A stretch of 63,068 bases of DNA, filler included, from Hyphochytrium catenoides (taxonomy: Eukaryota > Protista > Hyphochytriomycota), in NCBI GenBank assembly GCA_900088475.1. It is 10 parts of 10 records of this genome, joined end to end, with 100 filler letters (N's around TTAATTAATTAA, not from the genome) between each part and the next. Parts side by side here need not be neighbours in the genome. Positions count along the whole stretch, not along the records: positions 27,122 to 34,074 come from FLMG01004472.1; 9 more parts are not named here. The stretch is one strand, 5' to 3'. The notes beneath the pieces were generated by a model that was not told the origin of the DNA, searched no databases, and saw nothing but the letters and a program-made list of their open reading frames with translations. The position numbers were made by a program, and so were the translations under genes. Positions 27,122 through 34,174 of this stretch are shown piece after piece (position 1 is the first letter of the stretch; each line of letters starts with the position of its first letter).

Positions 27122-28238
27122 GAGAGGGAGAGGGAGAGAGAGGGAGAGAGAGAGATAGAATCGGCCAGATAAGAGAGTAAAATCAGAACTATTCCCTTAA
27201 GGCACGAGGAGTAGATACACAGAGAGAGTGATAAAGACAACGAAAGAGGAGAGAGAAGAATGAAGAGCGGCGAGCGCGGAGAGAGAAAGAGAGAGAGGAG
27301 AGAAAGTCACTTACATCAACCTAGAACACGACAGTGGGGTGCGAGAAAGAGCTATAATTATCAGCGAAGCGGGGTTAAAAGAAGAGAGAAGGGGAAAGAG
27401 GAGGAGAGAGAGAGAGCGCGTCTACCTGTATCTGAGAGCTACGAGTCTTCTGCCTCCTCTCCCTCTGTCTCTCGCCTCCGGGAAGGGCTCTTGAGTTCGT
27501 ACTGCTCTGTCTCCTCCGATGTATCTTCCCGTATAGGAAATCTCAAGCTTTCCTCTCTCTCTCTGCTCTATTAAAATGTCTATTGGTCAGAGAGAGAGAG
27601 AGAGAGAACGGAGAGAAAGGCAAGAGAAAAGAAAAGGAGAGAGATATTGAAGAGAGAGAAAAGAGGAACATGTTAGTGAGAGAAGAACGAGAAGAGAGAT
27701 CACGACGGTTGGCGGCTTAGCTGGGGAAAGAAAAGAGCTCTACAAGGAACAAACAAAGAGAATATCACGAGAGAGACTTGAGACAGAGACAGAAAGAAAG
27801 AGAACGTAAGGAGAGAAAATAGAAGGAGAGATGAGAAACAGGGGAAGAGAGAGAGAGAGAGAAACAATAAAGCAATTACCTCTTCCCATAGTGTTTGGTG
27901 TTATAGAAAAGCATGGGAAAAAGGGAATGTGTTTGTGACAAAGCTGTTTCCAGTTGGAGAGAGAGGGATGAAGCTGCAACTCTCTCTCTTCCCTTTCCAT
28001 ACTTTCTCCCTCGGGAAGANNNNNNNNNNNNNNNNNNNNNNNNNNNNNNNNNNNNNNNNNNNNNNNNNNNNNNNNNNNNNNNNNNNNNNNNNNNNNNNNN
28101 GAGAGAGAGAGAGAGAGAGAGAGAGAAAGTGTCAGACGGGGAAGAGAGAGAGGGGTAGAGGGGAGAGAGAGACAGAGAGAGAGAGAGAGACAGAGACAGA
28201 GGGAGAGACAATGCTGTACGAGAGGATGAGAGAGGGTC

Positions 28239-28270
<32 letters not shown>

Positions 28271-28470
28271 GAGGGCACACATAAGGAGGAAAGAAGCGGG
28301 GCAAGATAGAGTGAGGGAGAGAAACCACAGGTAGGGGAAGAAAGAAAGAGACAGAAGAGAGAGAGAGAGAGAGATTGCGTGCCCCACCATCCGCGCGCAA
28401 CCTCTTCCTTGTTCAAAAAAAGAAAGATCCCGGCGACCAGTTCTCCAGGTAAAGCGTCGAGAGGGTCCAT
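27122..28470 (-). CDS. F-box protein with downstream SPRY-like domain (3'-partial)
   Basis: MDPLDALPGELVAGIFLFLNKEEVAR (F-box LPxExxxxIFxFL). Later exons give SNWKQLCHKH and LEISYTGRYIGGDRAVRTQEPFP, a RanBP9/10-type SPRY start (YxG...DxxVRxxxPxP). Confidence 0.72.
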
Positions 28471-28621
28471 ACGTCTGCCACCTTCTTCCGCCCAAGCAAG
28501 CGGAAGAGCCTCTCTCTCGTGTTCTGAGGCCTCCTCTCTCTCTCTTTCTCTTCTGTCTGTTCTCTCTTCTTGCTCTCCACTTGTCTCTTCTCTCTCCTCT
28601 GGCCGTGGAGCCCAGTCCACG

Positions 28622-28952
28622 CTCTCTCTCCCGTCTGCTCTTGTCTCTTCGCTGAGTTTGAGCCTGGACTGGCCCCAGAAAGGCTCTCTTCTTCCGTTGT
28701 CCATCGTCCTTGAGAGAATCACGAAAAGAAATGCTCTTCTTTTCTCTCCCTCTCCCTGTGTCTCTCTCTTTTCTTCTCTCTCTCTCAGCCCACTCTTTCC
28801 TCTCTCTTTTCCTCTTTCTCTCCTTTGCCCAACTTTGCGCTGCTTCCCCAGTTCCAAGCGTTATGTGTCCTTGATTCTCCGGACTGTTGAAGATCCAGGA
28901 GCCAGTCCAGGCTCAAACTCAGCGAAGAGACAAGAGCAGACGGGAGAGAGAG
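28622..28952. repeat. Perfect 52-bp inverted repeat (28622-28673 / 28901-28952) with a 227-bp spacer
   Basis: ctctctctcccgtctgctcttgtctcttcgctgagtttgagcctggactggc and its exact reverse complement. Confidence 0.9.
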
Positions 28953-29154
28953 AACGACGCCAGGCACAAAGCCTTACAGAACTTTGTGGCATGGGAGCGA
29001 GAGATAGTGAGAAAGGAGAGAGAAGAGAGAGAAGAAGAGAGGGAAGGTAAGCCAAAGGGAGAAGACCATCTTTCTGATGGCAGAGTACCATCCTCGTACC
29101 TTGTGCAACTGATCAGACACAGAAAGAGGAAGAAGAGAGAACAGAGAAAGAGGG

Positions 29155-29218
<64 letters not shown>

Positions 29219-29253
29219 GAGAGAGAGAGAGAGAAAGAGAGAGAAAGAGAGTG

Positions 29254-29299
<46 letters not shown>

Positions 29300-29939
29300 A
29301 AAGAGTGAAAGAGAGTGAAAAAGAGAGAGAGAGAGAGGAGAGGAGGGAACAGGCACACCACCGGTAACGATGATCACTTATAGGTTATCAGCTGTAGTTG
29401 GAAATGGTAATATAATATAGAGTTTCGTGTATGGGGAGACTTCACCGTGATGGGTGGGCGGGTTATGGCAACAGTTATTTTATTATATTGTGCCATTGAT
29501 TATCTCAACCTTTCAACCCACACTAAACAACACTTCCCTCGAGTCCTGGATCATCGACGGCGGCGGCGGGCGGCAAGCAGCCGGCAGCGCACCATCCATG
29601 CATGATATGCATCGCAATGAATAGCTATAGCCAGCAGCCAGACGACCAACCAGCACCTTATTACACCGCGCGCAGATTCTTACGCGCGCCGCGCCACCTC
29701 CTTCTGCGACCCTCCGTCATAATAATATCCTACTAAACAGCAGCTTCGTAGTAAGTCTTCTTCTCATCATCATCAGAAACAAAAACATATGATGATGAGG
29801 TAGTAGTACTAGCACCATTTCCACTCTAGTGCCTCCTCCAAGAGATGACAATATACCTCCTCCTCCTACGCTACCACCACCCTCTACTCCGCGGCTCCTT
29901 GTCGCTTCTTCTGATGACGCCCTGAGTGGAACGCGTCTT

Positions 29940-31203
29940 TATTTCCCCAATAATACCCCTGCCAACAGAGGAGGATTTATTGATTATCACCACCCCAGAT
30001 GATCCTCCCTCGGGGCCATTCCAGACCTACGAAGAGGCTACGGAAGCCTTGCAAACGTGGGCAAAGAGTCTTGGATTTTAAGTCACTCAAACAAGACTCT
30101 ACGACTGTACAAAGAAGAGGAAGAAAGACCTCTTTCCCAACCTTTACTCTCATCAGGTCTATCTGACTTGTGAATGCGCCGGTGCGCCAAAAAAACTGGC
30201 ACCTGGGTCTCCTCGGAAGGGATCCAACAACAAGAAGACCAACTGCCCTTGGAATGTCACAACACTGGTGAGGGAGCCGAACGAGGAAGTCTTTGAAACC
30301 CACGTCAGGCGTCCCGAGAATCTTGTCCACAAGGGGCACCGGCTCCTACAGCAGCCGGTGCTAATAATAATGAAGGTGGTGGCGCAGGCGTCAATCCGTG
30401 GCTTCACGGAAGATGAGGTCGAACGGGTGGAGATAATGACAACAAGCGCTGGAATCAGCCCACGTTATATTTATAATTTGTTCACCTTGGAGAGAGAGCG
30501 CCGGCAAGAGGATACGACCTTTACCATCCTCCAGACAGTGCGAAACCTCATCAAGAAGAAGCTCCAAGCAGGTAAGAGGAATAAACGTCTACCATGCAGA
30601 TAGTACACCTCATGAAACACGTCCACCCAGATTCTGACAATAGAAAAATGGGAGACATCCAAGCTCTTATTTCCAGTTTTAGAAAGAGGCAGGATCTCAA
30701 TAATCCAGACTTCTACTACGACCTTTATGTAAACTATTACAATGAGGTTGCTGGAGTTATGTGGATGACCCCCGAACAGCTCTGGTCATGCGGGCCTCAC
30801 TCGTAGATGTTCGTACCGAAAGTGATGTCGAACCCTACAGAGTCGTGGTAAACCGTATAGGCCAGCAGATAGATAGTAGATGCTGTTCTCGGGGGTCATC
30901 CACATAACTCCAGCAACCTCCTCATTGTAATCATTTACATAAAGGTCGTAGTAGAAGTCTGGATGATTGAGATCCTGCCTCTTTCTAAAACTGGAAATAA
31001 GAGCTTGGATGTCTCCCATTTTTCTCTTGTCAGAATCTGGGTGGTGGACGTGTTTCATGAGGTGTACTATCTGCATGGTAGACGTGTATTCCTCTTACCT
31101 GCTGCTTGGAGCTTCTTGATGAGGTTCCGCACTGTCTGGATGGTAAAGGTCGTATCCTCTTGGTGCCGGCGCTCTCGCTCCAAGGTGAACAAATTATAAA
31201 TAT
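29940..31203 (+). mobile_element. Defective Mutator-like (MULE/FAR1) transposase fragment with an inverted duplication
   Basis: Plus strand: FQTYEEATEALQTWAKSLGF*V..VYLTCECAG..NKKTNCPW..HKGH (FAR1 WRKY/GCM1-type DNA-binding domain, stop at 30079-30081), then DIQALISSFRKRQ..NPDFYYDLYVN..EVAGVMWMTP. Minus strand in the loop: YHDSVGFDITFGTNIYE (MULE motif FGDVVxFDTTYxTNxY). Confidence 0.85.
30467..31203. repeat. Long inverted repeat: arms 30467-30780 (314 bp) and 30882-31203 (322 bp), 101-bp loop
   Basis: Manual alignment of arm 1 to the reverse complement of arm 2 gives 7 substitutions and 7 short indels. Confidence 0.95.
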
Positions 31204-31420
31204 CAATAGCTTTAGGCGGCTGTGCCTAGGACTCGCCCGCCGATGTTACTAGTGCGTAATCCAGCCTTCGGCTGCATTATTATAAGTGGAAGATGCTTGG
31301 ACGACACACTGATTTGGTTGTACAGTACGAAGTAACACCAGGAAGCTCTTCATCTCTTCCTATTTCCTACATGTAGAACCATCAGTATTTCCTACCTAGA
31401 TAATAGGCACACTCTACTCG

Positions 31421-31619
31421 TGTACAGCCAGGCAAAGTTGCTGACCGTTAGAGGTCTTATTTGCCGAGACGCGTCCGATCGTTACAACTGGGAGTCAGAG
31501 ATTTCCAGATTGACAGAGACCCTGGGTTGAGCTTCAATAGATTGAGATTTCTGACGAATAAAGACCTGAACTCCGAACCTACCGGGGCTTGCACGAAGGG
31601 AACTAAGCGCAAGCTTACA
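31421..31619 (+). mobile_element. Probable solo LTR (199 bp) with 4-bp target-site duplication
   Basis: Termini TGTA...TACA, flanked on both sides by CTCG (31417-31420 and 31620-31623), with internal AATAAA at 31557-31562. Confidence 0.65.
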
Positions 31620-32294
31620 CTCGTTCTTCACGCACGCTTCCAACAGCAGAGTAGTGAGTGAGTGAGGAGTGAGTGAGTGAATGTCGAAAGTTTCTCAACT
31701 CTCAAATTTGCTGCAGGAGTTGCGTGACATGTCACCTCCACCTTCAGCTCCTACAGCTAAAGATACTGGAAAGTAGGTGATGCGTCTCGGGTAAAATAAG
31801 GTTACAACACAAATTCGCCTGGACGCACGCGATGTGTCTCAATTTATGGTGATACGTCTCGCGTTACAAATTCGAGTTATGTTTATAAAAACCCTTTCGC
31901 TTTCGCTCTGACCCCTTCATATATCCAAAGTAAACAAACAAAGACCCAAACCCCAAAAGAAAAACCCAAACAGTGATTAGTAAAAAGTCCATTTGTGCTG
32001 AAGCCCCTGTGGGTTGAAATTGAGGGGTGCTTCCCTCAGCTACTAAAACTACACTTTCAGCTTCACATTTTACGAGTTGAAGTTGATGATTGATCGGACC
32101 GAGAAACCAAGAATAACGCCCATCACAGCTTCTCTTCGCTCTCCTGCTGTTCAATGAGAAAAGAGAGAGACAGAGAGAGAAAAAGAGAGAGAGACAGAGA
32201 GCGAAACAGAGAGAGACAGAGAGAAAGAGTGACAGTGAGTGACAGAGAGAGAGAGGGAGTGACAGAGAGAGAGAGAGAGAGAGAGAGAGGGAGT

Positions 32295-32328
<34 letters not shown>

Positions 32329-32460
32329 CGCAGAGAGAGAGAGAGAACGAGTGACAATGAGAAGAAGAACAGGGACCCATAACCTCTATAATAAAACACA
32401 TCAACGGGAGAGACAGGAATAGACCAGCAACGAGGGAGAGAGAGAGCGAGAGAGCAGCCG

Positions 32461-32505
<45 letters not shown>

Positions 32506-32730
32506 AAAGAGGAGCAGGGATCGGTAAGTGGAGCTTTGAAAGGTGGCTGTAGATAGAGAGGCTAAATCTTCTTTTCTTCGAGGGGTTGCTCCCCACCTTT
32601 GTGGTGTCTATCTCTCTTGAGATCTGTGGCTTTCACTTGAGTCTCTCTCCTTCTTGCATATGGTGTCTTTTGCTCTCTCTGTGTGAGTCTGAGCTTTGAC
32701 GAAGCGGGGCAATGGTGTCGAAGTAGGTGC

Positions 32731-32775
<45 letters not shown>

Positions 32776-33225
32776 TCTCTCTCTTTCTCTCTCCCCCTCC
32801 CTCTCTCTCTCTCCCCCTCTCTCTCTCTCTCTTTTCTCCTCCTCCCATCTCTCTCTCTCCACGTCCGGCTGTCATTGTATCTCAGTCCTTCTCTCTTGTC
32901 TCTATCAAACACCCTGTCAGCTCTCTCTCTCTCTCACTGTGAAGTTCCGCTCGTTCCCTCTTTGTCCTCCTCTGTCGGTGCCCTCTCTCTCTCTCTCCTG
33001 TTTCTCTTCTTTCCTCCTCCTTTCTTTCCGTTTCTCTCGCTCTCCTTCTTTCCCTCTTCTTTGGCTGTCTTCTTTCTCTCTCTCTCTCTGTCTCTCTTTC
33101 CCCTCTCTCTCGTCTCGTCTCTGTTTCTCTCCTTGGTTTCATCTCTCTCTCCGTCTCTTTTTGCTTTGTTATGTCTCTAACCCTGCCGTGTGTAGGAGGT
33201 CGAGAGTGTATCAGAATCAGAGAAA

Positions 33226-33437
33226 ATGTCGGTGGAGGTCTTCATCGTGGAGGACAAGAGAGAGAACGAAGGTGATCTCCAGGCCTTTCGCTCTTTTCCA
33301 GATCTTACTCTCTCTGCCTCTCTCGTTGTCTCTCTGTTTCTCTCCGTCGCCCTTCCTTTCTATAGGTCTCTTACAACTCTCGGTCCGTATCTCCCTCCCT
33401 CCATCCCTCTCTCCGCCCCACCTCCCCTTTCCCAACC

Positions 33438-33497
<60 letters not shown>

Positions 33498-33643
33498 TGG
33501 CTCTCTCTTCTCTCTCGTCCCTATCCTTCTCCGCCTCTCCTTCCGAACCGCGATGCCTTCCCGTCATCACTTTCCAGTTCCTGCTTCGCTGTCCAGAGCA
33601 TTATCCTCTCCTGTCTATGAATATTGCGGCCCTGCAAATCCAG
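33226..33643 (+). CDS. Possible first two exons (33226-33271, 33578-33643) of an unidentified gene
   Basis: MSVEVFIVEDKRENE g|GT..AG|tt PASLSRALSSPVYEYCGPANP g|GTAAG is phase-consistent and flanked by CT-rich introns; no homology recognised. Confidence 0.35.
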
Positions 33644-33813
33644 GTAAGAGAGCACTTTACCTATGCCTCTCTCTTCTCTCTCTCACTCTCACTCTCTCTC
33701 TCTCCGTGGGTGCGTCACTCCTTTTCTCATCCTCTTTCTTGCTGTTCAGCTGCCGCTTGCCTTCATCTGACCGCTTCATCTATATTCTCTCTTTTCGTCT
33801 CTTTGTGTTTCCC

Positions 33814-33873
<60 letters not shown>

Positions 33874-34174
33874 TCTATTTCTCTCCCTCTCTCTGGCTCT
33901 TCATCCTTTTCTCTCTCTCCTCTGACTTTCGCATCGTTTACTTGCTACTATAGCTGCATGTCTTGCTGGCGTCGCTTTCTCTCCCCTTTCTCTCTAAGTT
34001 CAGCTTTTCTTTTCCAGCTCTTCTCCTCTTTTTGCATTCACTCTTTCACATTCTCTCTCTCTCTCTCCCTCTCTNNNNNNNNNNNNNNNNNNNNNNNNNN
34101 NNNNNNNNNNNNNNNNNNTTAATTAATTAANNNNNNNNNNNNNNNNNNNNNNNNNNNNNNNNNNNNNNNNNNNN

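Follow-up and report, generated by a model that had tools for sequence, protein, structure and literature searches.

Tandem 2-3-bp indels between two facing partial copies of a putative FAR1/MULE-like transposase gene in Hyphochytrium catenoides

Slippage produces cryptic simplicity, i.e. scrambled short tandem repeats, as Tautz, Trick & Dover reportedly described in 1986. Tandem duplications account for most short insertions in flies and primates (Messer & Arndt 2007 as cited in PMC2374710), and polymerase slippage explains at least three quarters of human indels as changes in copy count, including 56% outside repeat hotspots (PMC3638132). In Dictyostelium, indels arise at twice the rate of substitutions and the share of indels that are multiples of 3 bp (3n) is high even outside simple repeats (PMC7466956), while in P. 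falciparum the indel rate is >10-fold higher than the substitution rate (PMC7466956; see also PMC6644851). Here we describe a locus of Hyphochytrium catenoides (assembly GCA_900088475.1) at which indels and substitution events are equally numerous between two facing partial gene copies, nearly all of the indels being 3 bp long. The locus lies in a 6.9-kb piece (FLMG01004472.1, positions 27122-34074) of the window, i.e. the whole stretch of 63,068 nucleotides that was analyzed, filler included, and all positions are those of the window.

Two facing partial gene copies

Exploring the piece, we found that its sole inverted repeat not made of simple sequence spans 737 bp (30467-31203). Its two arms, A and B, were delimited by aligning 30467-30800, both locally and globally, to the reverse complement of 30870-31203 (Table 1). 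The alignment holds 304 matches, 7 substitution events (8 mismatched bases) and 7 indels, with a net difference of +8 bp in arm B (322 vs 314 bp), which reproduces the counts of an earlier sequence-only reading of this DNA. Both arms show an identical change of reading frame across a stretch bounded by GT and AG, indicating a putative phase-1 intron between two exons, and each arm thus runs from the 3' part of exon 1 across the intron into the 5' part of exon 2.

The copies extend unequally beyond the arms. The open frame of copy A runs over 29926-30078 and 30082-30603 with a single in-frame stop between them at 30079-30081, and copy A has >500 bp of gene sequence on its 5' side that does not recur beyond 31203, as judged by BLAST within the piece. 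On the other side, six-frame translation of the minus strand shows that the spacer reads as an extension of copy B toward the start of the catalytic domain, ~100 bp further 3', a reading that needs at least one frameshift and has a stop codon at its end. Given that each copy carries gene sequence that is absent from the other, neither arm looks like a simple fold-back duplicate of its partner, and a clean fold-back (hairpin-primed) origin was set aside. From their extents, the two look like partial gene copies arranged tail to tail and abutting at 30780/30781.

Table 1. Coordinates of the arms, gene parts, indels and micro-repeat regions at the locus
Feature	Position	Strand	Length, description or count	Basis
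Arm A	30467-30780	+	314 bp	inverted-repeat alignment
Spacer between arms	30781-30881	-	101 bp	six-frame translation
Arm B	30882-31203	-	322 bp; 5' side of copy B cut off at 31203	inverted-repeat alignment
Copy A	29926-30780	+	putative FAR1/MULE-like transposase gene, 5' part; pseudogene, truncated at 30780	open frame, atlas neighbours
Putative GT..AG phase-1 intron, copy A	30572-30630	+	59 nt	frame change, splice dinucleotides kept
Putative intron counterpart, copy B	31037-31098	-	62 nt	same frame change, splice dinucleotides kept
+TCC in arm A	~30527-30529	+	exon 1, one codon more; exact tandem copy	
+AAG in arm A	~30553-30555	+	exon 1; 3 vs 2 AAG units; exact tandem copy	
+CAC in arm B	31163-31165, opposite A 30504/30505	-	exon 1, one codon more; inexact copy	
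+AGC/GCA in arm B	~31104-31106	-	end of exon 1, one codon more; exact tandem copy	
+CCA/CAC in arm B	~31045-31047	-	within the putative intron; exact tandem copy	
+GAG in arm B	~30921-30923	-	exon 2, one codon more; exact tandem copy	
+GA in arm B	~30889-30890	-	shifts the frame vs A; 7 bp short of the inner end of the homology; exact copy	
Segment at the 5' end/upstream of copy A	29500-29999	+	period 3: 26 vs 6.5 +/- 2.5 expected, P < 0.001	two-unit repeats vs shuffled sequence
Genic segment	30000-30466	+	period 3: 12 vs 5.2 expected, P = 0.007	two-unit repeats vs shuffled sequence
Right flank, non-coding	31204-32120		period 3: 13 vs 10.0 expected; second count 8 vs 4.7 and 5 vs 5.5	two-unit repeats vs shuffled sequence
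Right flank, non-coding	31204-32120		period 4: 8 observed vs 2.6 expected	two-unit repeats vs shuffled sequence

To identify the gene, the exons were searched separately against databases, the two being joined only by script and for codon alignment. In a protein atlas based on a language model, the neighbours of 30082-30570 are clusters of FAR1, HTH_FAR1, ZSWIM1/3, AFT and MULE at 0.92-0.93, and the wider neighbour set at 0.88-0.93 adds ZSWIM3_N, ZSWIM1-3 RNase-H-like and DBD_Tnp_Mut (recognition 2551). Searching the atlas with the 56-residue exon-2 piece returned a blank. The exon-1 protein gave no Pfam match by hmmscan even at E <= 10 and no sequence relative by phmmer against 1.84 billion cluster representatives, and Rfam and tRNA scans were empty; a single-sequence AlphaFold2 model of the protein had a pLDDT of 35. 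In the spacer, the minus strand carries at 30800-30835 a D-x-T-F-x-T-N-x-Y-like motif, which may belong to the start of the catalytic domain; a Pfam search of this motif region gave no match. The MULE (RNase-H-like, DDE) catalytic domain itself was not found, both copies being truncated before or at its first strand, and neither long terminal inverted repeats nor a 9-11-bp target duplication flank 29370-32130. The language-model neighbours together with recognisable motifs provide a lead that the exon-1 protein is the N-terminal part of a transposase of the Mutator superfamily (FAR1/MULE-like), and it appears to belong to a very divergent lineage of the FAR1/MULE family.

Indels and substitutions between the arms

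The indels are changes in copy number. Exact one-unit tandem copies make up 6 of the 7 indels (five of 3 bp and one of 2 bp), the remaining 3-bp indel being inexact, and at every indel site the repeat that pre-exists in the shorter allele is no longer than 6 bp. Were 3-bp insertions random, exact tandem copies in 5 of 6 would be expected by chance with P ~2e-7. Substitutions usually outnumber indels roughly 10:1, and against this ratio the occurrence of 7 indels among 14 events has P ~1e-4. The sequence-only reading had counted six exact tandem indels and one other 3-bp indel, as frequent as substitutions and most of them arising without a long pre-existing repeat, all of which we confirmed.

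To call such events duplications is a claim of polarity, and in a comparison of two sequences each of them could as well be the loss of one unit from the other arm. A third copy was sought by BLAST within the 6.9-kb piece and, together with any relative, in metagenome, genome and viral contigs, and none was found; an exact 27-mer search of metagenome contigs gave no match, and a search for homologous proteins with exon 1 and the arm-B ORF as queries revealed no relative. With a third copy absent from every collection searched, the indels are described here as copy-number changes rather than as gains or losses.

The five exonic indels add exactly one codon each, and the frames and splice sites are intact in both arms. 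At two indels the frame is irrelevant, namely the 3-bp one within the intron and the 2-bp one beside the junction. Among the exonic substitutions, 3 are synonymous on ~49 sites and 3 non-synonymous on ~200, giving a pN/pS of ~0.25, a contrast that is not significant (Fisher P = 0.09); an apparent fourth synonymous change was left out as a by-product of the GA indel. The sequence-only reading had cautioned that selection to keep the reading frame could favour 3-bp indels, noting as exceptions a tandem indel in the intron and the GA indel. Both exceptions were borne out, the former being a 3-bp tandem indel and the latter frame-shifting; as to selection itself, the caution agrees with the five codon-sized exonic indels and open frames and does not account for the intronic indel, which is 3 bp long as well.

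By type, the seven substitution events are five A:T<->C:G transversions and two transitions. RIP was rejected given that an excess of C:G to T:A is absent, transitions being 2 of the 7 events, and the RIP-like mutagenesis that had been offered as an analogy thus finds no C-to-T pattern to rest on.

One of the substitution events is an adjacent double substitution, CT vs TG (A 30734-30735), which lies 8-9 bp from the +GAG indel (30734-30743 / 30921-30933), so that both fall within 12 bp. In arm B, the CT/TG change adds an AATGA to one already present 9 bp downstream. The CT/TG pair and +GAG may thus be one complex event, and their arrangement suggests a single template switch rather than three separate mutations.

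Micro-repeats and simple sequence around the gene

As an internal test, two-unit tandem repeats were counted by region and compared with shuffled sequence (Table 1). Period-3 micro-repeats are in excess in the genic segment and, four-fold, in the segment 29500-29999, which is a patchwork of pure trinucleotide repeats of 2-4 units and many different motifs and in which stops interrupt all six frames. The right flank (31204-32120) shows no excess of period-3 micro-repeats over shuffles. The excess at 29500-29999 is the best support for the idea of a mutational bias put forward in the sequence-only reading; it fits a frame filter only if the segment was once coding, possibly for the transposase N-terminus, and has since decayed.

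No gene was recognised in the right flank, which harbors a (GAGT)n array at 31649-31680 and has 6-bp as well as 4-bp micro-repeats in excess. Imperfect GA/CT tract (at least 90% purine or pyrimidine) makes up about one third of the 6.9-kb piece, whose base composition is ~48% G+C. The tracts lie at 27122-29360 and 32150-34074, change strand several times, and flank a unique island of 2.8 kb that carries the gene copies. A crude and heavily confounded count within the GA tracts gave 105 phase-shifting doublets, 73 in-phase triplets and 147 non-purine interruptions.

Origin of the indels and comparison with known systems

The sequence-only reading had explained the arm differences by a special, duplication-biased process, for instance loss of MutS-beta (MSH2-MSH3) loop repair, staggered-nick fill-in or a RIP-like system, and the arms do not bear out such a process. 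Given that the literature describes short indels as mostly tandem, copy-count changes (PMC2374710, PMC3638132), the tandem-copy nature of the indels is the norm and does not point to anything special. The unusual features are the 1:1 ratio of indels to substitutions and the 3-bp size. As to size, 5 of the 6 indels of 3 bp are exonic and lie in a kept frame, so that selection on frame can explain it. Moreover, the 917-bp non-coding right flank lacks a 3-bp micro-repeat excess, and the comparison comprises one pair of 320 bp. The inference of a special mutator has seven events in a single selected sequence as its basis, and these are no proof of one. A high slippage rate is plausible, and it would be of a known kind.

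The most likely origin, which we consider somewhat more probable than not, is ordinary replication slippage in a slippage-prone genome, with the 3-bp class enriched mostly by selection on the reading frame and the copies juxtaposed later. The genome is evidently slippage-prone, given the share of the piece that is GA/CT tract. At very short proto-repeats, slippage would have added or removed single units of 2-3 bp, its unit sizes being mixed and filtered to 3n where frame matters. We infer that at least part of the divergence arose while both source copies still encoded a working protein and that, under purifying selection on the transposase frame, only codon-sized changes would have survived in exons; truncation and juxtaposition of the copies would have followed the divergence. 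The contrast between flank and gene in period-3 micro-repeats fits slippage filtered to 3n in frame.

Several observations count against a frame filter, and some of them favour a true mutational bias, in which 3-bp tandem duplications in unique DNA would be about as frequent as substitutions and the arms would have diverged neutrally and in place, owing to weak loop repair or a slippage-prone polymerase, with the same process seeding the microsatellite load. The sole intronic indel is also 3 bp; the trinucleotide excess at 29500-29999 lies where no frame is open today; and five codon indels in ~85 codons at ~2.5% substitution divergence are many, even for a tolerant region of a protein. The 1:1 ratio, with the probability given above, and the extent of the GA/CT tract point the same way, and a 3n bias can be mutational, for which the mutation-accumulation lines of Dictyostelium are a precedent (PMC7466956). 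Set against this are the absence of a period-3 excess from the non-coding right flank, the fact that each indel may equally be a loss, the presence of just two indels outside exons, and the unequal extents of copies A and B, which argue against divergence of a fold-back in place. On balance we regard a true mutational bias as possible and rather unlikely. Slightly more doubtful is the general statement that, in a GC-balanced genome laden with GA/CT tracts, de novo tandem duplications of 3 bp (and of 2-4 bp) in unique sequence are about as frequent as substitutions and continually seed microsatellites, a process of which the arm differences and the 29500-29999 excess would both be signs.

Other origins would place the cause in the arrangement of the arms or in the data. 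Biased homogenisation, by gene conversion or by repair of a hairpin heteroduplex that clears base mismatches better than 3-nt loops, would enrich indels among the surviving differences. The region can fold as a near-perfect stem of 320 bp with the indels as bulges of 2-3 nt, and the arms are separated by 101 bp only, but the idea is speculative and improbable, given that seven substitution events remain, evenly spread, with no conversion tracts visible. An artefact, i.e. a chimeric join of two paralogous copies in the assembly or mis-polishing between the arms, is a shade less credible again. Assembly and amplification are known to create chimeras with inverted junctions, and the scaffold contains an 81-N gap at 28020-28100, yet chimeric fold-backs have identical arms, whereas arms A and B differ by 5%, and sequencing errors are mainly 1-bp homopolymer changes rather than codon-sized, frame-keeping exact tandem copies. 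Finally, staggered cuts followed by fill-in produce exact short tandem copies, and each duplication of 2-3 bp could on that ground be read as the target-site duplication of an excised transposon. Such excision footprints are very improbable indeed, as transposons would have had to insert independently and excise cleanly six times within 320 bp; no target consensus is seen among TCC, AAG, AGC, CCA, GAG and GA, and one of the events lengthens an (AAG)2 that was already there.

At present the locus provides a small sample, probably filtered by selection, and its main practical value is that of a pointer to the indels in dead repeat copies. Were a 1:1 ratio with a triplet bias to hold genome-wide in neutral DNA, this genome would be a third case, different in composition, beside Dictyostelium and Plasmodium, in which slippage and not base change would dominate sequence evolution and which would offer a direct handle on the birth of microsatellites.

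The arrangement of the copies is reminiscent of Mu killer. Like Mu killer, the locus has, as modelled, a partial inverted duplication of a transposase gene that would be able to form a long hairpin. Folding of the 737-nt RNA of the inverted repeat gave a predicted free energy of -578 kcal/mol (z = -80), and transcription from the upstream side of the gene would yield an RNA hairpin with a near-perfect stem of 320 bp. Mu killer differs in that it includes a terminal inverted repeat and forms a hairpin of ~4 kb, whereas the stem here is 320 bp long, its arms diverge by 5%, and the locus shows no recognisable terminal repeat. By analogy, it is plausible that the hairpin-forming partial duplication is a Mu killer-like source of silencing RNA for this FAR1/MULE-like transposon family.

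The indels themselves resemble the copy-count indels of slippage, in that 6 of the 7 are exact one-unit changes of 2-3 bp adjoining their template and proto-repeats of no more than 6 bp suffice. They differ in frequency and size: in non-repetitive human DNA, base changes outnumber such indels ~16-fold and most of the indels are of 1 bp, whereas the arms show a 1:1 ratio and mostly 3-bp indels. With its trinucleotide repeats of many motifs, each 2-4 units long, the patchwork at 29500-29999 is similar to cryptic simplicity, except that only period 3 is enriched there. With Dictyostelium discoideum and Plasmodium falciparum the locus shares a load of simple repeats, indels at least as frequent as substitutions and many 3n indels also outside long repeats. 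Unlike the piece analyzed here, with its balanced composition and GA/CT tracts, the genomes of both have >77% A+T, and the mutation-accumulation data of Dictyostelium are deletion-biased, whereas the present data are a single comparison of 320 bp. Together, these comparisons indicate that the pattern of the arms is an instance of known phenomena, i.e. copy-count indels, codon-sized indels in coding sequence and the indel-rich spectra of repeat-rich genomes.
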